From: Selaginella moellendorffii
Lineage: Eukaryota; Plantae; Lycopodiophyta
Direction of reading: 5' to 3'
Length of the DNA: 64,000 bases
NCBI RefSeq assembly: GCF_000143415.4
Contig: NW_003314280.1
Location: forward strand, 2,215,549-2,279,548
Shown here: piece by piece, positions 778 through 31,014 of the stretch
Numbering within the stretch: the first letter of the stretch is position 1
Layout of the letters: every line of letters starts with the position of its first letter
The notes under the pieces: model-generated
The model's database searches: none
What the model saw: the letters and a program-made list of their open reading frames with translations, nothing else
Told to the model about the DNA's origin: nothing
Made by a program: the position numbers and the translations under genes

Positions 778-2720
778 ATGTGTTACCCAGCCCTAAGTGC
801 TCGCAGCGCGCTCATCGCTGCTCTGGCGGCAGGGCAGCGATCGCAGGTGAGGCGATTTCCCTGGTTGGGTGCGAATGCCGCGGCGCCATCGCGTCCGGCG
901 CCAGTGAAGCCGGATTTCTTTGACGACGATGACGAGGAGGAGGAGGAGGAGGATCAGAGGCAGCGGCGCAAGGCGGGCGAGCTGGATTGGGCGACTAGAG
1001 CTCGGGAGCTTGTGATTCAGGATATGAGCTTCCGGAAGTTCACCGACGAGGATTTCCAGGGCCTACTGCCCCCGCATTTGCGAATCTCCAAGAAGAAGGC
1101 CAAGAAGAAGAAGAAGAAGAAGACCAGGGCCAAGGAGGAAGGTGCCGAGGCTGCATTGCAGCTGGAGGAATCGCGCAGCGCGATTAAGACCAAAAAGAAG
1201 AAAGACAAGGACGATGATGCGAGCAGCAATCTCCAGGCTCCACTCCGGTCGATCCAAAGAAGCTCAAAGCGCTGGCTAAGAGATTTAACGCTCACAGGGA
1301 GCGCTACATGAACATCGAGCAAAGCTACAGCGACAGCGAAGGTGACGAGGGCGAGGAGGAGCTCACGACCGAGTTGACAGTGGTTTATGGGGAGCGTCGA
1401 GAGGAAGGAGGTGGTGAAGAGTCAGATGATGGCGAGCGGCCTTGAAAGATCCAAGGCTGCTGGAAATTCGTCTCAACCAGGACTTGGTCGACTCGAGGGA
1501 CGTGGAAGAAGTTTTGGAGACGATCGAGAGAGTGAAAGGAAGGTTTCGATTGAGCTCCATCAACGTCGCCACTGCTCTTCACAGGATCGCCAAGCATATG
1601 GTGACGCTGTCCATGTCCGAGACGAGAAGGCTCAAGTACGCCAGGCAGTGTGACGTGGCCGAGCTCGTTGCTTGGAATGCAACGCACAGGGCGTCTCCAA
1701 CATTGCCTATCTCCAAGATTGGAGGCCACCTTCTTTACCGCGGAGAGATGGAGATAATCGCTCGAGCAGCACTGGCGAAGGTTGACGAGTTCAATCCCAG
1801 AACATTGCCGGAGCTTTTGCTTCCATGCAGCACAGCTCGCCCGCACTCTTTGAGAAGCTCATGGACGCTGCGAGCAGAGTTTCCAAGGAGTTTCGAGCAC
1901 AGGAACTGGCCCAGCTTCTTTGGTCGTTCGGGTGCATGGCTCGGCCTCTGGATTCTTTCCTGGACTCATCGGCTTTTCAGCAAGAACAAGGTTCTCCAGA
2001 GCTCGGTGAAGAACAGTTCCAAGAGAATCTTTCCCCGTGAAGCTATCGATCGAGCAGCTCTGGAGCATCGTGTGGTCTTATGCTGTTCTCGGCCAACTCC
2101 AGGGTCCATTCTTCGCTCACGTTTGCAAGGAGATACGCGCGTTTGAGCAGCTGGGACAGCACAAGCATATGTTGCAGCTGACACAGCTATACCAGGTTGT
2201 GCTGGCCCTGAAGAGGGAAGGGAAGGATTTGCAGCTTGGCAGGATAGAGAAGCGGGCTCCGGGTGCCTGGGAAAAGGAGAGAAGCTCTCGCAAGTCCACT
2301 TAAAAGGATATTGAGAGGTTCTTGGTGTGCACTGGAAGGCAGTCGCATTCTCCGTGCTGAAGATTTCAAAATTCTTCCCCGGATCCCCGAGTACGTTGAT
2401 GCGGATTATTCTCTGGATTTTGCCATGAAGGGCGGTAAAGTTGCGATCTAGGTCAACGGGCCATTAGGATGTTTTTTCTTTTTGTGATAGGAGAACTTCT
2501 GGGACACACTGTTTTGAAGCATAGATTGCTGGAGGCTGCTGGATGGAAGATTATCTCTGCTTCCTATGAATTTTTTTTTTTCTTTGTTGTAGTGGAGAAA
2601 AATGTGTGTTTTGATACAGTGGGAGAACTTACAAGGAGAGTCGGAGCACGTTGACTTCCTACACAAGCTTCTGGCTCCTCACATCCGTCAAATAGAGCAA
2701 GTGAGTGAGCGAGCAGTGTG
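778..2720 (+). pseudogene. RAP-domain (OPR/RAP family) gene copy, disrupted
   Basis: Colinear with the intact gene at 38406-40487, including its promoter (from ~664) and last intron. It has lost the original ATG region and carries several frameshifting deletions (split ORFs 778-1311, 1442-2146, 2037-2303) and a stop in VAI*VNG. Confidence 0.92.
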
Positions 2721-2789
2721 ACCACTTTCACCTACCAGTTTCGAACCAGAAGTAACTCGTGATTTATAAACCAGGAAATTTCCCACACC

Positions 2790-3070
2790 AGAAAAGCTAA
2801 GAAAGCCTGGACCGGAATTCCATGGGGAATTACTGGGACCAGGTTTAGTTTCCTATCATGAAAGTTCTTGATGCTGATGTGACCTTTGAGAAACTTGGTC
2901 TTGTAGTATCGGCTCGTAATGTTGTTGCTGGCGCCTGCCACTAAATCCCGTCCTACCTCTGCTTGATTGGCTAGAGACACCCGATCGATTTCCAGCGCCG
3001 AGTTAGACGAACTAGGCAAGGAGAGTGAGAAAACAACTGCGGCTGCCACCACTCCCAGGTGATCCTTGAA
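2790..3070 (-). pseudogene. Unidentified gene fragment (hydrophobic VVAAAVVFSLSLPSSS segment), part of the duplicated unit
   Basis: ORF 2732-3052. A second, inverted copy lies at ~36460-36700 (+). No family recognised. Confidence 0.3.
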
Positions 3071-3127
3071 AGTTGTGTTTCATGATCACAATATCAGGAT
3101 CATAGAATATTTATGCTGGAGAATAAT

Positions 3128-3660
3128 TTACCCTCTGGGAGCAAGGTCTTGGTGCTCCTGCTCCACGTACTCATCCCTTACTTGGTCAGGAGGTCCATCT
3201 GGCGAGTGAGGTACTGCGTGGAGCTCACAGACCTCTTGAGCATGGCGTGCATTCTCTTGTAGAGCTCGCCGTGGTGGAAGACCATTGCGTGCTCTCCCAG
3301 CACGTCCTTGAGCGATCGAGGGTGGCCAGACTCAAACAGCACCCCCTCGTTGTGGAGCACAAACTTGACGCCCTCCACGTCCGTGACCCGTGAGCAAGCT
3401 CGTCTTGAACACCGTCCCATACCTCTCCACAAAAAGATCATAATAAAGATCATATCAGCATTCACAATCCAGCAACAAGATCATTGTATAGGTACTTCTT
3501 TCCCAAGACGTAAGGAGCCTTGGAGCGAGCAATCGTCACGTAAGGAATGAGCTCCCCAGTGAGAGGCCATCCCATGCTGAGCCTGTCCAGATTCCGGAAC
3601 CTCCATGGTCGCCAGTAAGCAAGTGCCACGAGCCAGAGAGCTCCGGCGATCCTTGCTACC
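3128..3660 (-). pseudogene. Cytochrome P450 5' fragment, CYP85 clan (CYP90-like)
   Basis: Translates to a membrane anchor (IAGALWLVALAYW), SMGWPLTGE, YGTVFKTSLL, then DVEGVKFVLHNEGVLFESGHPRSLKDVLG..GELYKRMH. No heme-binding C-terminal half is present. Confidence 0.8.
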
Positions 3661-3664
3661 TGCG

Positions 3665-3666
<2 letters not shown>

Positions 3667-3719
<53 letters not shown>
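3667..3719. repeat. (GA)n microsatellite
   Basis: Pure GA dinucleotide run upstream of the P450 fragment; a similar run sits in the equivalent position at 13257-13291. Confidence 0.95.
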
Positions 3720-3722
<3 letters not shown>

Positions 3723-4210
3723 ATTAGTTGGAAGAACTTTCGTGTCGCTATGTGCGAGACTTATTTACCCAGGTCGGTTGACCCACAAACTCGGTGGCAT
3801 TTCGATCGGTCGTGATGCTGTTGCTAGCGCCTGCCGCCTCCAGAAGATTCCTTGTAATAGGGAAACAAATGACGATTTTGGGTCTACGCCGGGAAATAAT
3901 GATGGCGATTAGTTTGTATCGGCTCTTGATGCTCTTGGCTGTATTTGGTTCCCCTGCACTCGCTGCTAGCGGCTGCGTAGCACGGGGTCGGGAGATCCAT
4001 CGTGCGGCCTCCAAGACATCGCCAGCGCTCTCGTGGCCATGTACGCGAAACTGCAACCAATTTCCGCTCCGGTCCTTACGAGCACGACACGAGCACGACG
4101 ATGCCGGTTGCAAGGGAAGAGCTGCTCTACAATCTCTCTGGCCAAATGATTCAAAGGAAGAGGTGAAACGAGATGTCGAATTATAAATAATAGATGTATA
4201 GGAAACAAAA

Positions 4211-5246
4211 CTAGCACGAGGCTCGAATTTCACCATGTCCTCCCGTGAGAGGCGAGAGCCTACCCATTTTGATCATGCCATTGGCGAAGGCAGTACAAAA
4301 TGCCTTCTGATTGTCCGCAAACTCCTTGACAAAGCCCGCCAGATCACTCTGCAACAGCTGCTGGTCTGAGAAGAGGAGCGACTGATTCGCTTGGACAGCT
4401 CGAAAGTACAAGTTGTCGAACGTGGTGGGGGAGGGATCCAAATTGTTCAATCTGTTTGGGGCTGTTGGAGGGCAATTCTTCTCGAGTCGGGACTTGAGGG
4501 CCGGATCGATGCTATCCCCTGTGGTTCCGTTGAAGAGGCGGGCGCTAAATGTGAAGCACTGGGCCTGGCCGATGGAATGGCCTCCTGAGAGCGCTACGAG
4601 ATCACGCTTGGAAAGGCCCCGCTTTTGGAATCTCTCATTGAGCTGCGTTGCGGTGAGATTTGGGCTGGGAATGGCGTCCACCGCGGCAGCGACGCTCGTG
4701 GAGCTGGGATTGTCCCGTCGGCCAAACTCTACTGTCCATGACGGGCCACCAAGCTGCAAAATTCGAAAGAGAAGAAAGCATTTGTAACTCAAATCAATGG
4801 AGACCTCACTTACGGCTATGACGGATTCCCGGGCGCTCAGAGCAAGAATGTCGGCGCATGATACAGTTTCCGGGCATGAAGTCTCCACGGCGCGCTTGAT
4901 ATTGTTGATGATTTTGAGTCCCTTGGTGGAGCGTCCATCTCCTACCTGGGGGAGCAGCGATCCGTCACAGCCCTGAGCGACAGCCAAATAAATGAGTAAC
5001 GGGGACTTATTGGAGTACTTACTTGAGCAAAGCAATCACGGAAGTGGAGCTTGAGGATGGATGCAGAGGATCGGCTGTCATTGGCAAACTCAGAGCGAAT
5101 CACGCTTCTAGCTATCTGGGGGAAGTCGGGACAAGTATTAGCGTAGAAAGAAGTGGACAGCTCTGAGGGCATCAGTGGTAATTCCTGGTGAATTACTAGC
5201 GCCGCAGCAGAGTTAACGTGAGGAGTAGATATTTAAATCGCTGCAT
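4211..5246 (-). pseudogene. Class III peroxidase-like gene, copy 1 (signal-peptide region disrupted; could still be read from ATG 5172)
   Basis: Motifs LKLHFRDCF, GCDGS, CPETVSCADILAL, LVALSGGHSIG, FDNLYF, GEIRASC; two short introns. ATG at 5246 runs into TAG TAA after 16 codons, and exon 2 has a 12-bp deletion relative to copy 2. Confidence 0.8.
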
Positions 5247-5350
5247 TCTTTCACGTAGGGAAGTGTGAAGAGAAGCTTGGCTTAGCACTCTAAAGAAAGA
5301 GAACACGGGATGGCTTTCAAAGAAAACTACTACTGGACTAGCATATGTAG

Positions 5351-5568
5351 TAGGGTTGTAGGTTCGTGGAAGCTCCGTACGTTGGTCGTAGGGTCGTGAG
5401 CGCTGTCGATCTTAAGACCCTGGGCTCTACATGATGAGGGCCGTCGATCTTACAATCGAAAGATTACAACCCAAAGATTACAACCGAAACAACATGATGA
5501 GGACCTTGTAGCGATGTTGTTTTTAATATGCTCTTCCACATATCTCTGCTTCTTGATAGTGGGCTTGA
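5351..5568 (+). repeat. ~220-bp direct repeat, copy 1 (copy 2 at ~9406-9647)
   Basis: Near-identical text AGGGTTGTAGGTTCGTGGAAGCTCCG...GATAGTGGGCTTGA on both sides of the MULE element. Confidence 0.9.
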
Positions 5569-8500
5569 TTACCGCCAGTGACGATGTACTCGACAGAGCC
5601 AAGGAGAGAATGAGCCTCCCGTTAAACACCATCCTGATTCACTCTCTCTCCGCTTACCTGGCGATGACGTGGCATCAGGCCGTTTTATCTCCAGCGCACT
5701 CCCTCTCCCGTCCGTCCGTCGCCGCTGCGCACTCCCGCCCGCGGCTCCCGCCCGCCCGCCCGCACTCCCACCCGCCCCCGCGCCCAGCGTGCGCCCTAAA
5801 ATTACTTCCACGTGGCCACAGTCCCAACACTTAGCCAAATTTCAATCAGCGCACCCTGTTCACGATTGTTGCCCCACAATTGACCTAAAAACGTTTCTGT
5901 TTCTTTTATGATCAAGCATGGCAGCAGCACATCAATTTCCAGAGGTAAGCAATCAATTCAACTTCATATTGATTCAAGAAAATCATTTAAAATCCCTCAT
6001 GGCTTGATGAGGTGCAAGAATTCCATGAAAAGGATTATTTTTGTGCAGATGATTTAGATTGGAATTTGTCTAAATCAAATGAAACTATAGCTCCTATTGT
6101 GTATATATTACAGAAGGATGTAAACAAGTTTTTAGATGGTGAGAGGAGAAGGGGTGATCGAGTGGATTTTTGGCGATTTTCTAACAAAAATTATGATCTT
6201 AGAGATTTGAAACGACCCAAAAACACAAGCTTTTTATCATTAATTAGGTATATCTTTTTAACAAAATATAATTACTAACTTCTTGATACAGGTATTGGTG
6301 TGAATATGGAAAACAAGATGCTTGTGAAACATCCTTTATTATGATTGCTGAATCTACACCAAAGTCAGGACTTGGAAGTAGACCAAGTTGAAGTTCAAAT
6401 AAGCGTGGTTGCCTTTGCAATTTTTTGGTCAAACAGTTTTACAAATGGCCTAATTATGTGCAAATTACATATTATCATAGAGAGCATTGTGATAAGAATG
6501 GGATTCCTTGTCATGGTCAACTTGATCCAACTGGGGGAAAGTCATTATTTCCTTAGAAGCTTTCAGCAGATATTTGACATTGGGTGATTCATATGATTCA
6601 ACAAGATTTCACATCAAATCAGATTTATAATGAGCATATACAGATTGTGGGAAGGAACAAATCAGCTAGTGAACCTCTTCATTGAGATGATTTTCTAACT
6701 ATGCAGGATATTAACAATCTGCATAGGAAGTATTCACTTTCAACTTATTGATTACATGAGAATGATGCACAGAGTGTACGTATTTGGAAGAACACAAATC
6801 CCGAGAAAGTATTTTTCTATCAGGAAGGTGATCGAGGTAAAGATTGTTTTACTATTGGGATTCAAACAACTTGGCAACTTCAAAAGATGGTGGACTTTTC
6901 AAATAATAATTTATTGAGTCTTGATGCAACTTTTGGAACTAATCGCTACAAGGTAAAATTTTCATTCATTTTTAAGTGAATAATATCTAATAATTTACAG
7001 TTTCCATTATACACCATGCTTGCTTTTGATTATCATGGAAATGGTATTCCAATTGCATGGGTTTTAACTTCTAGTGAGAAAGGAGAACACGATAGCTCTT
7101 AAAAAATGAGTTTTAGAACACATACCAAATTATAAACCATGGGTGATAATGATTGATGATGCTGAAGCATAGATTAATGCTATAAGGTAATTAATTTGAT
7201 ATGAAATAATTTAATTGTTTTCTTCTATATAGAGCTACATTTGATTGTCAAATTCTATTATGTATTTGGCATGTAAGGAGGAATTAGCTCAAACATATTA
7301 TTTGTAAGGTGAAATCTTGGGATATTAGGATGGAAATATGGAAATGTCTCAGAGATATTATGTATCATTTAATTCATACAGCTTTTCATGATGATAATAT
7401 TATGCGAGCTGAGATTAAATAACTTATTGAACATTTTGAGGTGGATTTTCAAAATGAAGTAGCCTTTATCAAGTATTTTCAAGACGAATGGAAAGACAAA
7501 GTTGGTAAGTGAATCAATATTTTAATTTTTATAATTTATTTTAATCTATATTTGATAGATATGTGGGTTGTTGCAACTTGAAATTTCCCTCATGCTAACA
7601 AGGAGACAAATAGTTCGATTGAGGCATTCCATGCAAATATGAAAGCTATACTCTCGTCCGAAAAAAAATATGCTCGCAATTGAAGGATGGATTGGGCAAT
7701 TCATCAACTTACTACTAAAGTTTATGCGAGGTACTGGTTTACTAGTTATTGCAAAGATCATGGTTTTATCCGAAACCATGCATATGAAAAACTAATCGAT
7801 GGTGCGATTGTTAAAGCAAGAAATATTAATGACTCTCAAGTAAAATTCGATAAGGACAATATTTATAAATCCTATGTACAATCCTCTTTAGATCCAGCTA
7901 TATTGTGTCTTGTTGTTGGAGTTGAAGGACACAGTGATTGGGCTTTTTCGACTTGGTGTAATTGTCCGTGGGCAACCAAAGGAAACTTTTGCAAGCATCA
8001 AGCAAAAATTATTATATTAAAACAAGGAGAAAAAACCGATTGGACTACAACTAGTTATGAGGTTCAACCATCACAATCGCATGCAATCTTAGAACCTGGG
8101 TCAGATGACTTATTTTATCGTCATCAAGATTTTGAAGCACTTGACTTGGAAGCTATGACAGAGGTAATTCACTTATTAATTAAAATTTTGAAATACTTAT
8201 AAAAATTTGAGCAGGAAAACATCCATCAAAATGTTTATCATGAGCAAGAAATTCAATTGGAGACTATATTAGGGGTAAACTAGCATATTTTATATACTAA
8301 TATATATGAATATTGAGCAGGAAGATATCCATCAAAATATACAACATCAACAAGAAATTTAGCTAAGGACTACTATAGAGGTAATTTACACTAAGTAAAT
8401 TTTAAATATTGATATGAACTTTGAGCAGGAAGATATCACTCCATCAAAAGTTACAAAAGCGACATTACAGCAGAAAATGATGGATATCTTACAAGATTTT

Positions 8501-9126
8501 CCTGATGAAGAAGCTTTTTTATTAATGGTTGACAACGATTTAGAAATGATACAGCAGAAGGTTGCAACTTTTAAAGCTAGGCCAAACAATCTTATTCATC
8601 CTGCAGCAGAATTTCAACAGCGTGTTGATAGTTATGGTACATCCTTGAAGCAAGCAAAACCTTTGGTGGAAAGAATTACAGGTAAAAGAAAAGCTTCTAG
8701 TAGTTTAGAAGCAACTCCTTTTACTAACCAGAGGAAGACAAGAAAGAAAAGCTCTTTAAACGAAAAACTCAATTTTAGCAAAGAATAAATAAAAAAACAA
8801 ACTCTTTATATACTTACATTGCATATATTTAAATTAGTGAGAAGATTTCATAAGTATACCACTCCTAATGGTCATCCATGACACTCATTGGCCACATAAA
8901 GCACGTAGAAAGACGCGCGCGCTGATTGAAATTTGGCATAAGTGTTGAGCCGTGAGGGCGAGTGGGCGGGAGCCGTGAGGGCGAGCGGGCGGGCGGGAGT
9001 GCGCAGCGGCGACGGACGGGAGAGGGAGTGCGCTGGAGATAAAACAAAACGAAGGCCTGATGCCACATCATTGCCAGGTAAGCGGAGAGAGAGTGAATCA
9101 GGATGGTGTTTAACGGGAGGCGGTAA
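5569..9126 (+). mobile_element. Mutator-like (MULE) DNA transposon with long GC-rich TIRs and a decayed SWIM-finger transposase
   Basis: TIRs at ~5569/5614-5852 and ~8918-9126 (GCCTCCCGTTAAACACCATCCTGATTCACTCTCTC... and its reverse complement) enclose an AT-rich interior coding LSLDATFGTNRYK, IMIDDAEA, LCIWHVRR and CNCPWATKGNFCKH. No TSD found. Confidence 0.85.
5918..8788 (+). pseudogene. Intron-containing MULE transposase with N-terminal Cys/His domain and SWIM zinc finger; several in-frame stops
   Basis: Spliced pieces read YWCEYG...KRGCLCNFLVK...HCDKNGIPCHG, FTIGIQTTWQL, DATFGTN, CxWH and SWIM CxCx7CxH. Several stops are TGA, consistent with CGA>TGA deamination. Confidence 0.8.
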
Positions 9127-9229
9127 TGAATGAAGTGGTGCGTGCCCTCTCTCTCTCTCTTTCATTCATTGCCTTTCATTCATTGAGAGAGAGGGCAAGC
9201 ACCTATAAATGGAATCTTCCCGAGATGCG

Positions 9230-9263
9230 ATTAGGAGGTCCCAGGTTCGAATCCCGTGGGCTC
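9230..9263 (+). other. tRNA-like 3'-half fragment (Pol III B-box)
   Basis: AGGAGGTCCCAGGTTCGAATCCC matches a tRNA variable loop plus T-arm consensus. No A-box, D-arm or acceptor stem is visible. Confidence 0.4.
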
Positions 9264-9405
9264 ATTGTCCTTATTTGTTCGGGTTGAATTTGTGTTGTGT
9301 GATGTTAAAATAACTCTCGTCATGGTTAAAATTCTCATGCTAAGGTGGTGAAAGTGACAAAATCGACATGGCCTCTTATCAAACCACGTAGCATGCTATT
9401 CTCCA

Positions 9406-9647
9406 AGGGTTGTAGGTTCGTGGAAGCTCCGACTCGTACGTACCTTTTCTTTGTGACCACCGTGGTCGTAGGGTCGTGAGCGCCGTCGATCTTAAGACCC
9501 TGGGCTCTACATGATGAGGGCCGTCGATCTTACAACTGAAAGATTACAACCCAAAGATTACAACTGAAACAACATGATGAGGACCTTGTAGCGATGTTTT
9601 TTTTAATATGCTCTTCCACATATCTCTGCTTCTTGATAGTGGGCTTG
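9406..9647 (+). repeat. ~240-bp direct repeat, copy 2
   Basis: Matches 5351-5568 with a short insertion. Confidence 0.9.
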
Positions 9648-10627
9648 AGAGATAACTTTTCTTTGACCCTACCAAGGCTTTGAGAGGTTTCTGTTTGGAA
9701 GTAAAAAGTAGTAAAAAGGATTTGATGTGACAAGTCAAATCGCGCTGATGTTTGCTCTTGGCCAACAATTGGCCGCCAGAGATTCTAATGCTTTCACTAC
9801 GATGTGCGGAAGAGAACACGTGGCGCGAATTTGAGTTAAAGCGCGTTGGAGAATCCCTTAAATCCCGACCACTCGAGCTCATCTTCAAGGCCTTGTAGCG
9901 ATGTTTGAAGATTAGATTAAACTTATATTATATTATGTTAAACTTTGTTTAGTAACAGTTAATTATTTTTTAATTATATAAATTAAATGAGTATTAAACG
10001 TTCGATACCCGTTCGAATCTGGTTGCGTTCGAATGTTCACATGCAAGTATGCCCGGGCCTCAACTTGGTGTGACTTGGTGTGAGGTACAAAAAAGATCCC
10101 TTTCTCTTTTTTGTACAAAAAAGAGAAAGAGAGAGCTGTACACACGTCATACTCCCCACAAGATCCCGGGAACTTCCCGCATGGCGAGTAGTCCTCCACA
10201 AAGTCGGTGATGATAGAGGTAAATTTCTCTTCCCTCAAATTTCTCTTTCTGTGGATCTTCAGCTAAGTCGTGTGGGGCATCCATCCACGTGTTGCGCCGC
10301 GAGAGCTCCAACTCGGCACTCTGAAGGTACCTGTCTGCTCGCATCATGGTCGTCTTTTTTCTTTTCGGTCTTAAGTGCGCTGCAAAATGCTCACTCGCCG
10401 GATATGTACAAAGAAAAGAACAGTACGAATAGGTACCGAACCTTCCACGAAGCCTCCCATTGGAAAGGCTTCCACGAACCTTCCATGTGCCTATAAATAC
10501 GCTCGTCCAGTAGTAGTTTTCTTGCTGTTTCTTTACAGCCATCCCGTGTTCTCTTTCTTTAGAGTGCTAAGCCAAGCTTCTCTTCACACTTCCCTCAAAT
10601 TCACGCCCACGTGAAAGAAAGATCACA

Positions 10628-11695
10628 ATGCAGCGAGTCAAATTTCTAACTCCACTCACCTCGGCAGCGTTACTGCTCGTGTTACTGTTAACGTTGCTAC
10701 GGCACTATGCAATTCACAAGGAATCACCAACGACGCCCTCGGAGCTCTCCACTTCTTTCTATGCTAATACTTGTCCCGACTTCCCCAAGATCGCTAGAAG
10801 CGTGATTCGCTCTGAAGTTGCCAATGACAGCCGATCCTCTGCATCCATCCTCAAGCTCCACTTCCGTGATTGCTTTGCTCAAGTAAGTACTCCAATAAGT
10901 CCCCGTTACTCATTTATTTGGCTGTCGCTCAGGGCTGTGACGGATCGCTGCTCCCCCAGGTCGGGAAGGAGCAAGGAGATGGACGCTCCACCAAGGGACT
11001 CAAAATCATCAACAATATCAAGCGCGCCGTGGAGACTTCATGCCCGGAAACTGTATCATGCGCCGACATTCTTGCTCTGAGCGCCCGGGAATCCGTCATA
11101 GCCGTAAGTGAGGTCTCCATTGATTTGAGTTACAAATGCTTTCTTCTTGCAGCTTGGTGGCCCGTCATGGACAGTTGAATTTGGTCGACGGGACAATCCC
11201 AGCTCCACGAGCGTCGCTGCCGCGGTGGACGCCATTCCCAGCCCAAATCTCACCGCAACGCAGCTGATTGAGAGCTTCCAAAAGCGGGGCCTTTCCAAGC
11301 GTGATCTCGTAGCGCTCTCGGGAGGCCATTCCATCGGCCAGGCCCAGTGCTCCACATTCAGCGCCCGCCTCTTCAACGGAACCGCAGGGGATAGCATCGA
11401 TCCGGCCCTCAAGTCCCGACTCGAGAAGACTTGCCCTCCAACAGCCCCAAACAGATTGAACAATTTGGATCCCTCCCCCACCACGTTCGACAACTTGTAC
11501 TTTCGAGCTGTCCAAGCCAATCAGTCGCTCCTCTTCTCAGACCAGCAGCTGTTGCAGAGTGACCTGGCGGGCTTTGTCAAGGAGTTTGCGGACAACCAGA
11601 AGGCATTTTTTATCGCCTTCGCCAATGCCATGATCAAAATTGGTAAGCTCTCGCCTCTCACGGGAGGACATGGTGAAATTCGAGCCTCGTGCTAG
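10628..11695 (+). CDS. Class III peroxidase-like protein, copy 2 (intact, ~322 aa, atypical active site)
   Basis: Exons 10628-10882, 10933-11103, 11153-11695 with GT-AG introns of 50 and 49 bp, all in frame. Signal peptide, eight conserved Cys and proximal His (GGHSIG) present. TATAAAT at ~10492. Confidence 0.88.
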
Positions 11696-16567: not shown

Positions 16568-18259
16568 TGTAAGCGACTAATTTTTCCATTCTACTTTAGT
16601 CACTTAACCACACCTCCGACCACTTGGAGGAGTCTCATTCACAACCTCCATAAGTCCCATTCAGGACTTAGGACTTGCTAGCCTCGAGAATGGCATCCAT
16701 GCCACTCAACCTTTGCACTTGGTCCAAGTGCTCCACGTGTCCGATCCCATGACCGACACCCTAAAGTACCACTGATATATGAGCCTGTTACGCTAGGCCA
16801 CGCTCATTCACCTTGGTCACATCGGTGGTCTCACACCACCTGCATTGCAATCCCGTCTCTCCAAGACTGGGCCATCCATCCATGAGTGATCATCCCAGAT
16901 CCACTCCTTAGCATCCTTAGGATGTCGACAGACATGGGGAATAGCCTTCCCCCAATGTCCTTTTTCTGGTCCCCACCAAGTCCCTTTATTGTCCATGGCC
17001 GTGTTCACCAACACTACCACTGAATCGAGGCTCATAGGCCCGACCACTAAGTCCCACAATCCTCTGGGACTTCCTCACCACACGACTGTGTCCTTGGTCA
17101 CTACCCCAGAGGACTGCTCCTCTTCCTTTCCACAGTCTGGGCCTTTGGGACAACATTTCAGAACACCGTGGCTTTACGTGAGCCACCTGGGTACTCTCCC
17201 CACCTTTCGCCTTTAGGTGCTCTAGCCATGGGCTTAGAGTGAGGTTCTGTTGAGCCACACCTGGTATCCAAGTAGGTAGTGCCACCCACACTTGGACTGG
17301 GAGCATCGGCCAGTCGATCTCCCGGGGGACCTAGAGCCAGCTCTTGAACACTTCACCAAGCTACCCCACTTGTTGGTCCGTATTCACTCTAGTCTTGGAC
17401 TTCCCAGTGGTCAGTTTATCACCCAACCTGGGTCTGGCCTTCTTGGGCCAAACTGGCTCCACTGCAGTCCTCCCCCTCACTATACTTTTGGAGCTCACCA
17501 AACCCCCCAAGGTCTGGGAGACGAACGCTTTGGGCTTTCACCCTCTCAGACTCGAACTCGGACTCGGACTCGGACTCGGACTCGGACTCGGACTCGGGCT
17601 CGGTCTCAGCCTTGGCCTCGGTCCCGGTCTCGGTCCCGGTCTCGGTCTCGACCTCGGACTCCATCTCGGGTCCTTCTCGGACTCCATCTCGGACTCCATC
17701 TCGGGCTCCGTCTTGGTCCATCTTGGACTCCATCTTGGACTCCATCTCGGGCTCCGTCTCGGTCCATCTCGGACTCCATCTCGGACTCCGTCTCGGTCCA
17801 TCTCGGACTCCATCTCGGTCCACTTCAGACTCCATCTCGGTCCACTTCAGACTCCATCTCAGACTCCATCTCGGGTCCATCTCGGACTCCGTCTCGGTCC
17901 ACCTCGGACTCCACTTCGGTCCACCTCGAACTCCATATCGGACTCCATCTCGGACTCCACTTTGGACTCCATATCGGACTCCACTTCGGGTCCATCTCGG
18001 ACTCAACTAGGGTCCGTCTTGGACTCCATCTTGGACACTTCCACGTGTCATGTGTTGGTCCTTTTTGGGTCCCTTTTTGGAGCCTTGCTTATTGCTCGCT
18101 CCTTGAGCACTTTGTCGGGAGTTCCACTCCCGCTCTCGACCTTCCAAGTTAGAGCTTTTAGTCCAAACGTGTTACACTCATTTGGGCTTTCGCTTCGGCC
18201 ACTACCACGTGGCACCCTTTCCGGCTCCACTTTAGGGCCTAGGGATTTTGTGTTTCATA
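16568..18259 (-). mobile_element. Solo LTR (same family as 22048-29980) inserted in the Helitron ORF
   Basis: TGTAAGCGAC...TGTGTTTCATA with a perfect 5-bp TSD GTTGG (16563-16567 and 18260-18264). The Helitron frame reads FPFGDRGW|HKNI across it. Confidence 0.93.
17546..18036. repeat. CpG-rich minisatellite in the solo LTR (CTCGGA/CTCGGT hexamers, CTCGGACTCCAT 12-mers)
   Basis: Directly visible tandem units, more degenerate than in the paired LTRs. Confidence 0.92.
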
Positions 18260-21636: not shown

Positions 21637-23044
21637 CCAAGGGGAACTAGCACCTCCATTTCCGCACTCAATCTACCAATCCTTCCATTGTGTAGACCAG
21701 CTATTCCATGTGAGGCAACTAGTCATCCACCCGTACCGCAGTCCCACGGTGGATACCTTCGTCCGTGGATACTCCACACAAGAGGAAGGACATACGCATG
21801 GATGCCCAATACGTATGATTTCAAATTTTAGGGGTAGGAATATACCTTGCTCAAGGGTATATTATACTTTTAAGTAGCCACTAATCAATGGGAATCGAAC
21901 CCGTGCCATTTGCTCCGATACCAACTGTAGCGCACGTGGTTTTGACCCTTTATCCTATGGTGATTTACCATAGGATAACACCACGAAGCGGAACCTAAAC
22001 CCTCTTTGTGCCAAGTGACAGATGCCACATGTCACATACCACGTGTCTGTAAGCGACTAAATTTTCCATTCTACTTTAGTCACTTAACCACACCTCTGAC
22101 CACTTGGAGGAGTCTCATTCACAACCTCCATAAGTCCAATCCAGGACTTGGGACTTGCTAGCCCTGAGAATGGCATTCATGCCACTCAACATTTGCAATT
22201 GGTCCAAGTGCTCCACGTGTCCGATCCCATGACCGACACTCAAAGGTACCACCGACATAGCAGCCCGTTACGCTAAGGCCATGCCCAATCACCTTTGCCA
22301 CACTGGTAGTCCAATACCACTTGCATCACCGTCTTGGCTCTCCAAGACTAGGCAAACCATCCGTGAGTGGTCATCTCAGATCCACTCCTTAGCATCCTTA
22401 GGATGCCCCCCGACAAGGGGAATAGCCTTCCCCAATATCCCTCTGTCAGTCCCCACTAAGTCCCTTTCTGCCCCTGGCCGTGTTTGCCAACACTGCCACT
22501 GGATCGAGACCCACAGGCCTGACCACTAAGTCCCACGGTCCTCTGGGACTTCCTCACCACACGACTGTGTCCTTGGTCACTACCCCAGAGGACTGCTCCT
22601 CTTCCTTTCCACAGTCTGGGCCTTTGGGACAACATTTCGGAACACCGTGGCCTTACGCGAGCCACCTGGGTACTCTCCTCGCCTTCTGCCCTTGGGTGCT
22701 CTAGCCATGGGCTTAGAGCGGGTTCCGTTGAGCCACACTAGGTATCCAAGTAGGTAGTGCCACCCACACTTGGACTGGGAGCATCGGCCAGTCGATCTCC
22801 CGGGGGAACTAGAGCCGGCTCTTGAACACTTCACCAAGCTACCCCGCTTGTCGGTCTGTGTTCACTCTAGTCTTGGACTTCCTAGTGGGCAGCTCATCAC
22901 CCAACACTGGGTCCGGCCTTCCTGGGCCAAACTGGCCTTTCCTGGCCAAACTGGCTCCACTGCAGTCCTCCCCCTACTATACTTTTGGAGCTCACCAAAC
23001 CCCCCAGGGTCTGGGAGACAAACGCTTTGGGCTTTCACCCTCTC

Positions 23045-23161
23045 AGGCTCCGGACTTGGACTCGGACTCGGATTCGGACTCAGACTCGGGCTCGGGCTCG
23101 GTCTCGACCTCAGCCTCGGTCTCGGTCTCGGCCTCAGCCTCGGTCTCGGTCTCGGTCCCGA

Positions 23162-23199
<38 letters not shown>

Positions 23200-23770
23200 C
23201 CAGTCTCGGTCTCGACTTCGGACTCCATCTCGGACTCCATCTCGGACTCCATCTCGGACTCCATCTCGGGTCCATCTCGGGTCCATCTCGGACTCCATCT
23301 CGGACTCCATCTCGGGTCCATCTCGGACTCCATCTCGGACTCCATTTCGGGTCCATCTCGGGTCCATCTCGGGTCCATCTCGGACTCCATCTCGGACTCC
23401 ATTTCGGGTCCATCTCGGGTCCACCTCGGGTCCATCTCGGACTCCATCTCGGACTCCATTTCGGGTCCATCTCGGGTCCACCTCGGACTCCATCTCGGAC
23501 TCCATCTCGGACTCCATCTCGGACTCCATCTCGGGTCCATCTCGGACTCCACTTCGGACTCCAACTCGGGTCCATCTCGGACTCCACTTCGGACTCCACT
23601 TCGGACTCCAACTCGGGTCCATCTCGGACTCCACTTCGGATTCCAACTCGGGTCCATCTCGGACTCCACTTCGGACTCCAACTCTGGTCCATCTCGGACT
23701 CCACTTCGGACTCCAACTCGGGTCCATCTCGGACTCCACTTCGGACTCCAACTCGAGTCCATCTCAGACA
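23045..23770. repeat. LTR-internal minisatellite (6-, 11-, 12- and compound 35-bp units)
   Basis: Tandem CTCGGT, CTCGGACTCCAT and CTCGGGTCCAT units. Confidence 0.95.
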
Positions 23771-26700
23771 CTCCCACGTGTCATGTGTTGGTCCTTTTGG
23801 GTCCCTTTTTGGAGCCTCGCCTTTTGCTCGCTTCGTGCTCGTTCCTCGAGCCCTTCGTTGGGAGTTCCACTCCCGCTCTTGACTTTTCAAGTCGGAGCTT
23901 TTGGTCCAAACGTGTTACGCTCGTTTGGCTCTCGCTTCGGCCACTACCATGTGGCGCCCTTCCGGCTCCACTTTGGGGCCTAGGGATTTTGTGTCTCACA
24001 ACTCCACCACCCATAGACGAAGTTCGATGTCCTCATCGAACGGTGAACCATTTTATAAAGTAACACTTGCATGTGTTACCATTTCCATCCTTGGCGCGTA
24101 GCCAATATTTGTCAATGGTGTGACATTGAAGGCTCACCATGCCTTCTCCATATTCGTCAATGGTTGGACATTGAAGGCTCACCATGCCTTTTGCATATCC
24201 TCTAAGGAGGGTAGTCTCTTCAACTTAGAGACTGATTGGACCACATATAGTAGTTCTCTTCTTTTATTGGTTTAGTTCTCGCTAAACCTCTTAGAGACCC
24301 TTCTCTAAGTCAATCCCACTACTCCTTCTTGAGTAGTCTCAATTTCTGTCGATATAACCTTTGCACTTTGGAACTTTGAATTTTGACTTCTTGGAGTCAA
24401 TTTCCTAGGTGTCTTCGACACCTTGCCTTGCACCTTTTGTGCAACTCCACTTCCCATCCTAGGAAGTTCTCTACTCGAGGGCACCATCATCCTCTCTTCT
24501 ATTTTGTGCCAAAGTTCCAGTTATCATACTTTGTGCTAGGGCTGTTCATGGCCCTATCATTTGGCTACCTTACCGCTCCCTCCCTTGGAGCTTCCACTTT
24601 CGCCAAATCGGAGCATTTCGGAATCCATCCTTGGAAGTCCACTTCCTTTCCCACAAGCTGTTAGCACCGAACACATTAGTGTTCCTTGGCTAACTTTGCC
24701 ATTTGGATCCCTTCCATTAAATTCCATGGCCCAAACTTGGCCACTAGTCCTTTGCTCCTATCCTTGATTGTTGCACCCCGCAACATCGGATCGCTACCTC
24801 CATTTTTGAGGTATCCTTTCGGTTCCATAGCAAAGACTCTTCTTTGCCTAGTCCGGAGGATGTTTGCCCCTAGTATGTCTCTTTAGCATCTTCTGCTATG
24901 GGCTCTATCCATGGCCCAACTTCGTGACCCTCCCATGGGTCTTTTATAGAAACTACTTTCCTCGGACTCACTATGCCATCGCACGGACATAGTTTATTTC
25001 CCTTAGGTGCTCTTCCCACTTGGTCATCACGACCAAGCCACACCATCTTAAACAGTTCAATTTCAACATTTTGAACCAGGAACTTCATTCCTTAGCCAAC
25101 CAAGGACCTTGTCCTTATCTGGCCATAAGATCACCTAGTGATCTCACCTTGGCACGTTAACAGAGTTGCCAAGAGGTACTTGGTCTTCTAGACCTCCAAG
25201 TTGTTGACTATAACCCCGGGGGCATCCCCCACACTGGCGGTGCACCCAAGCTAGCCCTTACGGCCAAGGGTTCATAGCAACTGAGATTAGGTGTCCCCAT
25301 CTCACTCACCACGACCTTGGTGCCACTTGCACCAAAGCGTTCAAGTTAGATATGCCGAGCTTTCACTCTAAGCAATCTAACCGTGCATCACGACTCCGAG
25401 GCATCCCTCGCTTGGCGGTGTGCCCAAACCAGTCTCCCCACTGAGAGTCCATGACCACCGAAATATGAGTGTCCTCATATTCCAAACCATCACCACGCCC
25501 TAGTGATTTGGGACTCGAACCCAAGCACTAGAGGGTCGGGACTCAAACCCAACCTCCGTATATGCATCTACGGACGGCATCACACAAGATGCCTGGCGTG
25601 ACTCCCCACGCCGGTGCACCAACCTATTTTTAAAGCGCGCTACAGATCACAGCTTAGGAACCTAGTTCCTCCACATTGCCAAGTCCTCTCACTTGACATG
25701 TCTGTGATCATGCATGGACTCCTCCATGCTCGGCCCTATGGCCCACCCTTTTTGAAGTTATCACCTTCAACTAGGGTATTTTTTCCCCCGACGTGCCAAT
25801 CTCGCTTGGCAAGTCCTCCGACCACTGTAACATGGTTCCTGCATAAGCGTGAAAGTCCTTGACCATCGACTTTCGTTCAAAGCCCTCTCCTTGAACACTC
25901 GGGAACTACTTCCCTAACCTTGATAGCCTTGCCTCATGGCAAGCTTCAAGACCACACTTCTGCTGCGCCACTCTGATTTCGCGTGTTCCATGAACCATTT
26001 ACACTTGGCCTTTCTAAGTACTAAGCTACCTAGAATCGTCTTTGGGAACCTTGAAGGAACTCTGTCCCTCAGCTTGCTAAGGCCTCCCTTTTTGCAAGCC
26101 TTCCAAATGCCACATAGTCTAACATGGACAATTCCATATTTTAGACTCTCCATGGCATCACGGTTGCTAGCGGCAACACCCTCGAGCCCCCACTTGATTC
26201 TCCACTCCCAGCTGGCATAACCAACCTTGGTTATGCCCTTTGATTCCTACGGTTCGGTTCTATCCCCTTACTTCTTGCTTTTTGGCTTCACACCTTTCCT
26301 TTGGTCATTCTCCTCCAGACCAGGAGGATAGCTTTGCACTTTCTATCATGCTTTAGCAAGTATTCTTAGGGATGAACCTACCCAATAGCCTAAGGAGTGG
26401 TTCCTCAATCCGGGTATGCCCACCTTATAATCCCACGCACTGGGATTACATTGTTACTTATGGGCCTTTACCTGCCCATCACTAGCCTTGCCAAAATTCC
26501 ATTTTTGGCTTTGTCCAACTCGGGTAAACAGTCCTATCCTGTCTCCGCAACCTTGGACATTTGGATAGCACCTTCTATCCATCATTCGCTAGGGACTTAG
26601 TCCCTTGGGCTTTATCCATTGCCCTCGCGACATCAAACACCACCTTCTGGTGTTCTAGAGTGTTCGGGTGTCCCAATGATGGCTTTCTTGACAATGAGTA

Positions 26701-29096
26701 TTTCCTTTTATGACATTGACTTACTATATCGCAACACAAGCAACTTATCCCCCGTAAGGGTATATCCAACTTCCCTATGCTATTAAGAAGTCTTGGGTAG
26801 CTACCTTCTACCCGTTTAACCAGTTATTTTGCACCTCTTGCTTAGTTGCCTCATAGTTGTCAAGTCCTACAACTCATTGCTTGGTGCTTTCACACCTCCA
26901 TCATTATTTGGGTCACCACACTCCAACTGCATGCTCTGCAGCTTAGGCTATGCTATTCCCATTTCCATTGGGATTCCTTTGGCAAGGGGTTCTCATGAAC
27001 CCACCAACATAGCCTCAAGGTATCACACCTTGGCACATTTGGTGTCTCCACACCATCGGCTCCACGAGCCTACCTCTATGACATTTCCCCTTCGTGTCTA
27101 AGTCTTTGCCAAGACCCACACCGCTCTTTCTCATGCCAACCATCCGTTAGCACTGCACCATAGAGGTCACACACAACTTTATGTCAAAGTTGTTTTCTTC
27201 TGGGAACACCTTTCCCATAACTTTAGCATGGCACATTTTGCCATCGATGAGATACCCTCTGTTCTCATCCTTGGATCCTATTATCTCCCCCCATCCTTTG
27301 TGGGGTACAACACACCTCAGTCCAAATGCTTCCATCAGTCCTTTTAGGACCATCCGTTGACTCTACTTGAGTCATCCAGCAGTTTTGGACTTGGTTAATC
27401 CACAGACCTGTAAGGTCCTACTTGTGAGGCATTAGCTCACTGGAATACATTTCTTGCATTCCTGTCCTACTCAAAAGGACTATTTTCACAAGTGTTACTC
27501 CGACACTTGATTTTGTTCTTTGGGGGCAACCTTTGCCCCTTAGGACTACTTGTCCATGTGATGAGAACACCAACTCATCCACTTAATACACCCCCAACTC
27601 CTTGGGTTGTTCCAGCATTTATTAGAGGTAGCCCCGGCTACCTTTTCAAGGACTTGAGTCCTCTTCCGTATTTGACCTCCCACGGTCATTACTTCTGGTC
27701 TCACATTCATGAGCACCAACCTCAACTATATGAGGAAAATCTTGTGACTCCTTTATTGTTTTGGAGTCTTTATCTTTCCCGTGATCCCAACTGTAGTTGT
27801 TTACCACAACTACATTAGCCAGTTTGCTAAGTCAAACGCTCATCTGGATCACATCCTCAACTCTTTGAGGAAAACCATATACTGTTCCCAAGATCCCAAA
27901 GTCGTTCCCTTACTGGACCCTTTTCTATCCACCACATCGCGCCCAAGTTCATGCATGAACTCGAGTGGAGAGCCATGTCCTCTCGACGAGCTACTCCTCA
28001 AGGATAGGCCCATTCCTAGGACTTTCCGATGCCAATATCAATGGTGATATACTTGAGCACCAATAAAAGTCGGACTAAGGAACAGCTCCGATACCAAATT
28101 GTAAGCGACTAAATTTTCCATTCTACTTTAATCACTTAACCACACCTCTGACCACTTGGAGGAGTCTCATTCACAACCTCCATAAGTCCAATCCAGGACT
28201 TGGGACTTGCTAGCCCTGAGAATGGCATCCATGCCACTCAACATTTGCAATTGGTCCAAGTGCTCCACGTGTCCGATCCCATGACCGACACTCAAAGGTA
28301 CCACCGACATAGCAGCCCGTTACGCTAAGGCCATGCCCAATCACCTTTGCCACACTGGTAGTCCAATACCACTTGCATCACCGTCTTGGCTCTCCAAGAC
28401 TAGGCAAACCATCCGTGAGTGGTCATCTCAGATCCACTCCTTAGCATCCTTAGGATGCCCCCCGACAAGGGGAATAGCCTTCCCCAATATCCCTCTGTCA
28501 GTCCCCACTAAGTCCCTTTCTGCCCCTGGCCGTGTTTGCCAACACTGCCACTGGATCGAGACCCACAGGCCTGACCACTAAGTCCCACGGTCCTCTGGGA
28601 CTTCCTCACCACACAATTGTGTCCTTGGTCACTACCCCAGAGGACTGCTCCTCTTCCTTTCCACAGTCTGGGCCTTTGGGACAACATTTCGGAACACCGT
28701 GGCCTTACGCGAGCCACCTGGGTACTCTCCTCGCCTTCTGCCCTTGGGTGCTCTAGCCATGGGCTTAGAGCGGGTTCCGTTGAGCCACACCAGGTATCCA
28801 AGTAGGTAGTGCCATCCACACTTGGACTGGGAGCATCGGCCAGTCGATCTCCCGGGGGAACTAGAGCCGGCTCTTGAACACTTCACCAAGCTACCCCGCT
28901 TGTCGGTCTGTGTTCACTCTAGTCTTGGACTTCCTAGTGGGCAGCTCATCACCCAACACTGGGTCCGGCCTTCCTGGGCCAAACTGGCCTTTCCTGGCCA
29001 AACTGGCTCCACTGCAGTCCTCCCCCTACTATACTTTTGGAGCTCACCAAACCCCCCAGGGTCTGGGAGACGAACGCTTTGGGCTTTCACCCTCTC

Positions 29097-29207
29097 AGGC
29101 TCCGGACTCGGACTCGGACTCGGACTCGGACTCGGACTCGGATTCGGACTCAGACTCGGGCTCGGGCTCGGTCTCGGCCTCGGCCTCGGTCTCGGTCTCG
29201 GTCCCGA

Positions 29208-29239
<32 letters not shown>

Positions 29240-29750
29240 CCGGTCTCGGTCTCGACTTCGGACTCCATCTCGGACTCCATCTTGGACTCCATCTTGGGTC
29301 CATCTCGGGTCCATCTCGGGTCCATCTCGGACTCCATCTCGGACTCCATCTCGGGTCCATCTCGGACTCCATCTCGGACTCCATTTCAGGTCCATCTCGG
29401 GTCCATCTCGGGTCCATCTCGGACTCCATCTCGGACTCCATTTCGGGTCCATCTCGGGTCCACCTCGGGTCCATCTCGGACTCCATCTCGGACTCCATTT
29501 CGGGTCCATCTCGGGTCCACCTCGGACTCCATCTCGGACTCCATCTCGGACTCCATCTCGGGTCCATCTCGGACTCCACTTCGGACTCCAACTCGGGTCC
29601 ATCTCGGACTCCACTTCGGACTCCAACTCGGGTCCATCTCGGACTCCACTTCGGACTCCAACTCGGGTCCATCTCGGACTCCACTTCGGACTCCAACTCG
29701 GGTCCATCTCGGACTCCACTTCGGACTCCAACTTGAGTCCATCTCGGACA
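29097..29750. repeat. LTR-internal minisatellite, second LTR
   Basis: Same units as 23045-23770 but a different copy number. Confidence 0.95.
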
Positions 29751-31014
29751 CTCCCACGTGTCATGTGTTGGTCCTTTTGGGTCCCTTTTTGGAGCCTCGC
29801 CTTTTGCTCGCTTCGTGCTCGTTCCTCGAGCCCTTCGTTGGGAGTTCCACTCCCGCTCTTGACTTTTCAAGTCGGAGCTTTTTGTCCAAACGTGTTACGC
29901 TCGTTTGGCTCTCGCTTCGGCCACTACCATGTGGCGCCCTTCCGGCTCCACTTTGGGGCCTAGGGATTTTGTGTCTCACAGTGTCCATGCCACGTGTCCA
30001 TAGGAACCCGAGGTTCAGGGCCTTGAGCCACTGAACGAAGGAACGGTGCCAAACTCCCATGTGTGACGCCAAGGAGTGATGGAACCGGACCACGGAGCAA
30101 CTCACGAGCATATAGCCCAAGGAGCGAAGGGACAGGAGCCCGGAGCGACTTGGAACAGTCCTAGAGCAACCAGCATCCCAATGCCAGAACCAGCATGCAA
30201 AACGGAGCTAAACGGAGTTTGGCGCTATTTCGGCATACCGGTGGCCTAACGTGAGGATATGGGTACTCCACCAGCTAGCATGGAATGGAACTTGGGCTTA
30301 GACCCAAGCCGGACACAGAACAAGGACAGACACGCAAGCGGAAGCTAGACTATGCCTCAGGTTGGTCAGCCATGCCCGACCTACCCACTATCCCTACTAT
30401 ACATTTGGAACCCCCCATAGCCCCCCCCCCCCTTGAGGAACACACGCTTTGGGCTTTCACCCCAAGCCTCCCTTAGTACCAGGAGTTAGTCTCTGGGACA
30501 AGCTCAAAATTTACTAAATATGGAATGTCCTTAAATTGTGAATTTGGACACGGGACGAACACCATTGTGTTCAGGCCAATCTCTACATCTGTAGATATGC
30601 CAAATGAGCAAATCTGGACACTTTCCATAAATAGCATTTGGGACCGAAATAAGACCAACACAAAGGGCATGATAGCGAGGGTGTTTGGCAGACACGGTAA
30701 ACTATCATCTAGCGATATTGAGGGACCAAGCTCAATATCGCGGGGGTTCCCAACACTAGCAAGTGCAAGCCAACATCATGAGTTTCTCATCACTGTGTCA
30801 AGTCTGCTTGACTAAAATGACAACTTAGGATTTCCTTCCTTAGTGCCCTTCCGGTCTAAGTGCACATGTGATGACCAGTTTCTTAACTAGCTTAGGCGGA
30901 GACTAATAACAGGTCCAGCAATACTGACCTCCTGCCATCGTGGCAGTAAGGTAAGAGTGTCCGTAAGGACTGGCCGACAAGTAACTTTCGATACCCGAAG
31001 TCACATTCGCGACA

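Follow-up and report, generated by a model that had tools for sequence, protein, structure and literature searches.

Here we report that a decayed, formerly autonomous copy of a Mutator-like element (MULE) very probably lies at 5614-9121 of a 64,000-nt stretch of the Selaginella moellendorffii genome (NCBI RefSeq assembly GCF_000143415.4, contig NW_003314280.1, positions 2,215,549 to 2,279,548 of the forward strand; hereafter the window, numbered from its first letter), and that the copy belongs, with the same high probability, to a distinct MULE lineage from which two seed-plant SWIM paralogues were most likely domesticated. The lineage is multi-copy or bounded by terminal inverted repeats (TIRs) in liverworts, Selaginella, ferns, Taxus and metagenome eukaryotes, and in seed plants it is also represented by two conserved genes.

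The element is about 3.5 kb long, and its inverted ends measure some 200-240 nt. The left TIR (5614-5852, + strand) is 239 nt long with a GC content of 0.65 and contains a CCCG-rich subterminal repeat at 5734-5785, and the right TIR (8919-9121, - strand) is 203 nt long with a GC content of 0.61. The outermost arms, 5614-5681 and 9054-9121, are 97% complementary across 68 nt, and collinear arms reach inward to 5852 and 8919; by BLAST the two arms are 84% identical over 175 nt and 96.6% identical over a further 29 nt. In a global alignment the outer ~128 nt differ by only two substitutions and two indels (of 8 and 4 nt), and both substitutions, which fall in the outer 68 nt, are CpG transitions. 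Inward of this part the same alignment runs through a degenerate CCCG-rich stretch to a well-matched inner end. An exact search with a 25-nt terminal probe finds these two sites and no others in the 64-kb window, where none is expected by chance. The sequence-only reading of this DNA had recognised TIRs around an open reading frame (ORF) and set the ends at 5569 and 9126; the inverted repeats are real, while the ends have to be moved to 5614 and 9121. As termini, 5569 and 9126 are backed by the 8-mer pair TTACCGCC / GGCGGTAA only, the 45 nt of 5569-5613 are unmatched in the right arm, and the junction 5568/5569 is the break-off point of a flanking direct repeat rather than an element end.

Directly outside the supported termini stand two candidate target-site duplications (TSDs), GAGAATGA at 5606-5613 on the left and GGTAATGA at 9122-9129 on the right. 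These abutting 8-mers agree at six of eight positions, which is weak evidence and a score that random pairs of flanks drawn from the window equal in 0.6% of cases, and a 9-mer match (7/9) is obtained only with a 3-nt offset, a level reached by 1.7% in that search space. Mutator elements duplicate about 9 bp of target (range 8-11); judged from these flanks, a decayed target duplication of 8-9 bp is plausible.

The TIRs exactly bracket a gene on the + strand, which we modelled by three-frame translation and exon tracing and compared by tblastn with two homologues, the Perilla protein P0057 and the fern protein P0004. It has nine exons and eight introns of 44-67 nt, all of the GT...AG type and consistent in phase. 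Exon 1 (5918-5944) consists of an ATG and eight codons before a GT donor at 5945; homologues do not reach it, and its start codon is a prediction. Exon 2 (6012-6247), which tblastn aligns with residues 20-91 of P0057, encodes the N-terminal block FCADDLDW ... VNKFLDGE. Exon 3 (6292-6952) encodes a putative zinc-binding N-terminal domain and runs on into the catalytic core; it contains the motifs YWCEYG (6293-6310), GCLCNF (6407-6424) and H..CH (6485-6514) as well as the first catalytic Asp (6923-6925), and is interrupted by five stops (6389, 6554, 6575, 6683 and 6749). The second catalytic Asp pair (7155-7160) lies in exon 4 (7001-7186; stops at 7107 and 7170) and the C..H motif CIWH (Cys 7261-7263, His 7270-7272) in exon 5 (7233-7504; stops at 7285 and 7420), and exon 6 (7559-8163; stops at 7579 and 7681) holds the catalytic Glu (7621-7623, within SIEAFH) and the SWIM signature CxC..CxH (7957-7998). 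Exons 7 (8215-8274) and 8 (8321-8380; stop at 8360) are mini-exons of 20 codons each, and exon 9 (8429-8788) carries the C-terminal motif ..YGTSLKQAKPLVE.. and a basic tail before the natural stop at 8786-8788. The two mini-exons and the first part of exon 9 repeat in tandem an exon-plus-intron unit of ~105 nt (self-BLAST, 8198-8352 against 8303-8464, 72%).

Altogether, 12 in-frame stops (7 TGA, 4 TAG and 1 TAA) interrupt ~813 codons, and the frame changes by +1 near 7095-7110. In tblastn alignments with homologues, the conserved residues that face these stops are mostly Arg or Trp, which points to CGA>TGA and TGG>TGA/TAG changes, that is, to cytosine deamination. The interior of the element has a GC content of 0.32, a CpG observed/expected ratio of 0.40 and an excess of TpG/CpA, and the flanks have a CpG ratio of 0.8-0.87. 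Because of the 12 stops and the frameshift, the copy, as read from its sequence, cannot make a transposase, and it would at most be mobilised in trans by an intact relative. Every peptide block quoted in the sequence-only reading was found again on the + strand, and its spliced, stop-ridden ORF is borne out by the eight GT-AG introns, the 12 stops and the single frameshift; its description of the element as recently mobile does not agree with these same lesions, with the internal CpG depletion or with the degenerate target duplication.

Recent mobility could nonetheless be sought in another form, namely that of a non-autonomous copy whose ORF had already decayed, which moved in trans fairly recently and on which selection acted at the termini only. 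The state of the TIRs is what makes this worth weighing: the outer 128 nt have diverged by no more than the two CpG transitions and the two indels, in contrast to the ruined interior, and the CpG ratio of ~1.2 in the TIRs against 0.40 inside is the contrast expected of cis-selection on the ends. We nevertheless consider such a history unlikely, given that just six of the eight abutting TSD positions match, that self-BLAST and the probe search find no second copy of any part of the element in the 64-kb window, and that none of the 1.84 billion representative proteins searched (see below) exceeds ~43% identity to the piece used as query.

That query was a 160-residue stop-free piece of exon 6 (7684-8163), with which HMMER matched 86 proteins. 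As far as they were looked up, all of them belong to the same family, with the exception of one spurious sea-urchin hit. Since there is no close protein in the databases searched, no intact partner from S. moellendorffii, nor a nearly intact one, is on record there. Among the matches are liverwort proteins (several paralogues from Riccia sorocarpa, and Calypogeia), many paralogues from the fern Adiantum, and a cluster from Taxus chinensis with 18 members at at least 90% identity that are spread across many chromosome-scale contigs. Further matches are Phoenix and Perilla proteins and unnamed metagenome and Logan proteins. The Perilla protein, P0057, is named 'SWIM zinc finger family protein' in its source and is part of a family that is 72-88% identical among angiosperms, from Magnolia and Nelumbo to the asterids, mostly with one contig per cluster; the Hibiscus protein P0215, whose source name reads 'like AT1G60560', belongs to it at 73% identity, and we refer to these as AT1G60560-type genes. 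Adiantum also provided an observation of a different kind: the family member P0226 (1248 aa) is annotated as a fusion to a lipase (PF01764) domain, which may reflect either a faulty gene model or a true fusion of host and transposase sequences.

Both kinds of relative align with the window gene along its length. In tblastn the fern protein P0004 is collinear with the element from end to end at 32-35% identity, and residues 20-601 of P0057 are collinear with exons 2-6 at 27-29% identity; over exon 6 the window copy is 25-32% identical to the host genes. The end-to-end likeness to host SWIM genes, to which the sequence-only reading had pointed, therefore stands as collinear homology with the AT1G60560-type family that begins at the FCxxDLDW block and extends through the SWIM finger.

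Relatives elsewhere are multi-copy, or have TIRs and TSDs at their ends. When metagenome contigs were scanned with a profile built from the C-terminal half of the protein, 217 relatives came to light in a few JGI sample series, which are probably associated with peat mosses. L004, an apparently intact related element, occupies a contig of 8842 nt that begins and ends in a 130-nt inverted repeat of 99% identity; its ORFs of 158, 315 and 501 aa cover the full-length alignment without stops and include a match to the Pfam MULE domain. On its opposite strand are two ORFs of 589 aa (6255-8024, -) and 332 aa (5165-6163, -) that match no Pfam family and may be accessory genes. L064 and L069 are one locus seen in two samples, a 7.1-kb copy riddled with stops, whose TIRs are 43 nt long and whose perfect target duplication, GTGAAAGT(G), allows a reading of either 8 or 9 bp. 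L065 has inverted arms of ~600 nt and a target duplication matching at eight of nine positions; an exact 8-bp TSD with TIRs at 1314-7258 of the same contig was traced to a palindromic 8-mer within these long arms and discarded as artefactual. A simple screen detected no long inverted repeat in most of the other metagenome loci. The intron between ..GTNxYK and FPLYT.. lies at an identical place in the window (6952/7001) and in L004 (1832/1960), so that very distant transposon lineages share its position.

The superfamily of the lineage was assigned through its full-length members. Three of them exceed the cut-off of 27.6 bits for the Pfam MULE domain (PF10551), namely P0070 (52.2 bits), P0004 (44.1 bits) and P0008 (29.1 bits), as does the L004 ORF (32.3 bits); all three proteins also match ZSWIM1-3 RNaseH-like, and their SWIM matches are weak. 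The host-type protein P0057 scores 14 bits against MULE, below the threshold. No KDZ, FAR1 or DBD_Tnp_Mut match appears among the Pfam hits (E up to 0.1) of nine full-length relatives, and the PMD domain likewise has no match in full-length relatives. In the ESM Atlas, every neighbour of P0004 is a MULE, SWIM, ZSWIM1-3 or FAR1-related cluster, with FAR1-related clusters among the closest in structure (TM 0.57-0.58), and phmmer of P0004 against the PDB returned nothing. At both ends of the protein are conserved features beyond Pfam: the N-terminal CxC...H...CH pattern, which is conserved in the family, has no Pfam match, and the C-terminal ..SLKRxKPFIE.. motif has no Pfam family. Codons 6923 (D), 7155/7158 (DD), 7261-7272 (CIWH) and 7621 (E) of the window align with invariant columns of the family, and the predicted window transposase would thus possess a D-D-E triad with a C..H motif between the second D and the E.

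Because the MULE domain is above threshold, KDZ is without a match and relatives carry TIRs and target duplications of 8-9 bp, the family is a divergent branch of the Mutator superfamily and not a branch of Zisupton. Zisupton is reportedly a SWIM-bearing DDE transposase with an 8-bp TSD. That the family should belong to Zisupton/KDZ rather than to Mutator is suggested by the SWIM finger downstream of the core, by the 8 bp at which the best abutting TSD of the window reads and by the 8-bp reading of the L064 duplication; yet the L064 and L065 duplications fit 9 bp equally well, the full-length relatives match MULE and ZSWIM1-3 RNaseH-like and not KDZ, and the Atlas neighbours are MULE and FAR1 clusters, so that we regard this assignment as scarcely probable at all. 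The earlier suggestion of a poorly catalogued MULE lineage is thereby upheld by full-length relatives that pass the MULE cut-off and match none of KDZ, FAR1 and DBD_Tnp_Mut, although the Selaginella family may well be catalogued in Repbase already.

Phylogenetic trees were built in two ways, as a quick PMSF tree of 45 rows and as more careful LG+G4 trees of exon 3 and exon 6 separately; all are unrooted, and the window exons entered them translated singly in frame, with X at stops. In the PMSF tree the seed-plant genes fall into a single clade (SH-aLRT 100) comprising two paralogous clades with short branches, each of which holds a Ginkgo protein together with angiosperm proteins. The multi-copy Taxus lineage is sister to this host clade (98), Adiantum forms a clade of its own (99), and the Riccia lineages, a metagenome clade and the window piece branch below the host clade without resolution. 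The per-exon trees recover the host clade with a support of 99-100, place Taxus as its sister on exon 6 (93/82), and leave window exons 3 and 6 in a basal polytomy outside it. Constraining the window exon to group with the host clade costs 12.3 log-likelihood units on exon 6 (approximately unbiased (AU) test, p-AU 0.059) and 3.1 units on exon 3 (p-AU 0.365). The specific sister position to the host genes that had been proposed for the window element is not recovered, given that the sister is Taxus and the window exons fall into the basal polytomy, and the AU test does not firmly reject such a position. These alignments make the window element part of the family but do not demonstrate that it is sister to the host genes.

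The window and the multi-copy lineages retain the first D (DATFGTN), the DD, the C..H motif (CLWH/CIWH), the E (IEAYH) and the SWIM CxC..CxH. In the AT1G60560-type clade (A), SLWR stands in place of CLWH, and the first Asp is retained in most members; in the second host clade (B), CLWH is retained, and the first Asp is replaced by His in the angiosperms and kept as Asp in the Ginkgo member. No source name links this second clade to At4g13970. The first catalytic Asp had been taken as a distinguishing mark of the window element; it is indeed kept there, but the AT1G60560-type clade keeps it as well. Beyond the core, the motif ..DGxxxSLKRxKPFIE.. and the basic tail (8620-8680 in the window) are common to the window, Adiantum, Taxus and metagenome lineages (carried by P0004, P0228, P0297, P0033, P0308 and P0009), and a pattern search did not find the motif in the seed-plant host proteins. 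The host genes are conserved and low in copy number, and each host clade lacks a different catalytic feature while the multi-copy, TIR-bearing kin have them all, which is the usual signature of domestication. The alignments thus make it most likely that the two seed-plant SWIM paralogues are domesticated transposases.

The same data bear on the reverse possibility that the window locus is no transposon at all but a pseudogenised host SWIM paralogue, with inverted repeats that are fortuitous or derive from a local rearrangement. A single copy in the window would fit such a pseudogene, as would the rearranged surroundings, where an inverted peroxidase duplication and a direct repeat of 97% identity lie on both sides. 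Against this, the inverted repeats are symmetric around the gene at 200-240 nt and the second occurrence of the terminal probe is not expected by chance; furthermore, the window exons fall outside the strongly supported host clade and share the C..H and C-terminal motifs with TIR-bounded or multi-copy relatives. This makes a host pseudogene very improbable, and we keep to the interpretation as a decayed MULE copy.

Several of our observations weigh against that interpretation. Only one copy is present within the 64-kb window, and its target duplication is degenerate, with weak statistics. Since the pieces of the window protein reach no Pfam threshold (of ten stop-free pieces, the only match is to SWIM, at 15.5 bits and below the cut-off), membership among MULEs has to be drawn from the homologues. 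For the N-terminal domain, where a WRKY/GCM1/FLYWCH-type zinc finger would be expected of a MULE, the AF2 model has a pLDDT of 59 and shows three short strands, and a search of the PDB by structure yields no score above Z 2.9. The TIRs, in which CpG is not depleted as it is in the interior, are not explained by uniform decay in place. Finally, the family tree being unrooted, the direction from transposon to host gene is one that we infer.

By analogy with other MULEs, an intact element of this lineage would encode a transposase of ~820 residues that binds the long GC-rich TIRs through its N-terminal Cys/His domain. The RNase-H-like D-D-E core with its C..H motif, followed by the SWIM finger, would cut and rejoin the DNA, and insertion would duplicate 8-9 bp of the target. 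TIR binding, the cut-and-paste reaction and the length of the duplication are here carried over from what is established for MULEs.

The element sits in the ~5.4-kb intergenic space between two peroxidase genes. The first, at 4211-5172 (-), contains an ORF (4211-5035) that encodes a class III peroxidase (PF00141, 181 bits) and has as its best match 'peroxidase P7 isoform X1 [Selaginella moellendorffii]' (93% identity); the second is a paralogue at 10628-11695 (+), placed head-to-head with the minus-strand gene. The 5' regions of the two genes are an inverted duplication (5036-5373 against 10468-10869, 77%). Within the intergenic space, a direct repeat of ~190-240 nt (5352-5568 and 9406-9648, with 97% identity between 5383-5568 and 9463-9648) flanks the element together with 284 nt of unique sequence, and its left copy stops precisely at the junction 5568/5569, leaving 45 nt between it and the left TIR. 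We considered the direct repeat as the long terminal repeats of a retrotransposon or of a terminal-repeat retrotransposon in miniature (TRIM) and rejected this, as inspection by eye revealed no TG..CA ends, no primer-binding-site-like sequence and no flanking duplication; ARAGORN predicted no tRNA gene near it. A tRNA-like fragment with the T-arm motif GGTTCGAATCC is present at 9229-9270, where ARAGORN again predicted no tRNA gene; it may be a short interspersed element (SINE) or a tRNA relic.

Elsewhere in the window, a unit of ~5.5-6 kb is present in three tandem copies (16568-18185, 22048-23928 and 28100-29908), each of which holds long arrays with periods of 12 nt and 35 nt (TCCATCTCGGAC-like), and copies 2 and 3 are up to 98-100% identical in parts. 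A segmental duplication of 94-100% identity links 833-2150 with 38497-39866, ~37.7 kb apart.

A dead MULE copy in Selaginella is ordinary on its own, and the value of this one lies in its link to the host genes. Two deeply conserved plant genes, on whose function the literature searched has essentially nothing, match elements with TIRs and target duplications in their entire architecture, and this kinship provides a testable origin for the AT1G60560-type genes as domesticated Mutator transposases. The residues that changed at domestication would be the C..H motif in one host clade and the first Asp in the other. The kinship also suggests that the host proteins may bind DNA through their retained Cys/His and SWIM domains without transposing. 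With rather less than even confidence, we propose that the AT1G60560-type gene and its paralogue represent a third, undescribed domestication of a plant MULE beside FHY3/FAR1 and MUSTANG, which took place before the gymnosperm-angiosperm split and whose transposon kin, the window copy included, persist. If this is true, bryophytes, Selaginella, ferns and conifers still hold such kin in a form that can be recognised and is partly intact.

We found no paper that describes the host family as transposase-derived. Among the full texts searched, AT1G60560 and AT4G13970 occur in only two, as table entries, the latter as 'Zinc ion binding'. Of two papers that deal with the exaptation of plant transposons, PMC4948706 and PMC5715367, neither names them in its main text, and the searched supplements of PMC5715367 do not contain them either. 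Selaginella is not mentioned in a survey of Mutator elements (PMC6446971), and a literature search on PF21056 and on domesticated MULE/SWIM families returned nothing relevant.

Compared with known systems, the window element is most readily set beside the plant MULE/MuDR elements. Many MULE groups have 9-bp TSDs, TIRs of 30-400 bp and a SWIM domain (Table 1 of PMC6446971), and the window element resembles plant MULE/MuDR in its long TIRs, its D-D-E and C..H residues and its C-terminal SWIM finger, as do its relatives in their target duplications of 8-9 bp and their Pfam MULE domain. It differs from angiosperm MULEs in that the FAR1, DBD_Tnp_Mut and PMD domains common there have no match in its relatives, and from typical MULEs in the divergence of its MULE domain, which goes so far that the angiosperm host relatives stay under the threshold. 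Zisupton/KDZ differs in its KDZ Pfam domain, which has no match in the relatives, whereas MULE is matched.

With the AT1G60560-type genes and the paralogous clade the window copy is collinear over ~600 residues, and the blocks common to the window and the AT1G60560-type genes comprise FCxxDLDW, YWCxYG, GCxCxF, H..CH, GIQTxWQ, DxTFG, the DD, the E block and SWIM; unlike the AT1G60560-type genes, the window copy has TIRs and the C-terminal motif and lies outside the host clade. The closest precedents for such a relation are FHY3/FAR1 and MUSTANG, MULE transposases that turned into conserved plant genes (PMC4948706, PMC6446971). The window's family differs from FHY3/FAR1 in that no FAR1 DNA-binding domain is detected in its full-length relatives, and, set against FHY3/FAR1 and MUSTANG together, it is distinguished by its two seed-plant clades, each with a Ginkgo member.

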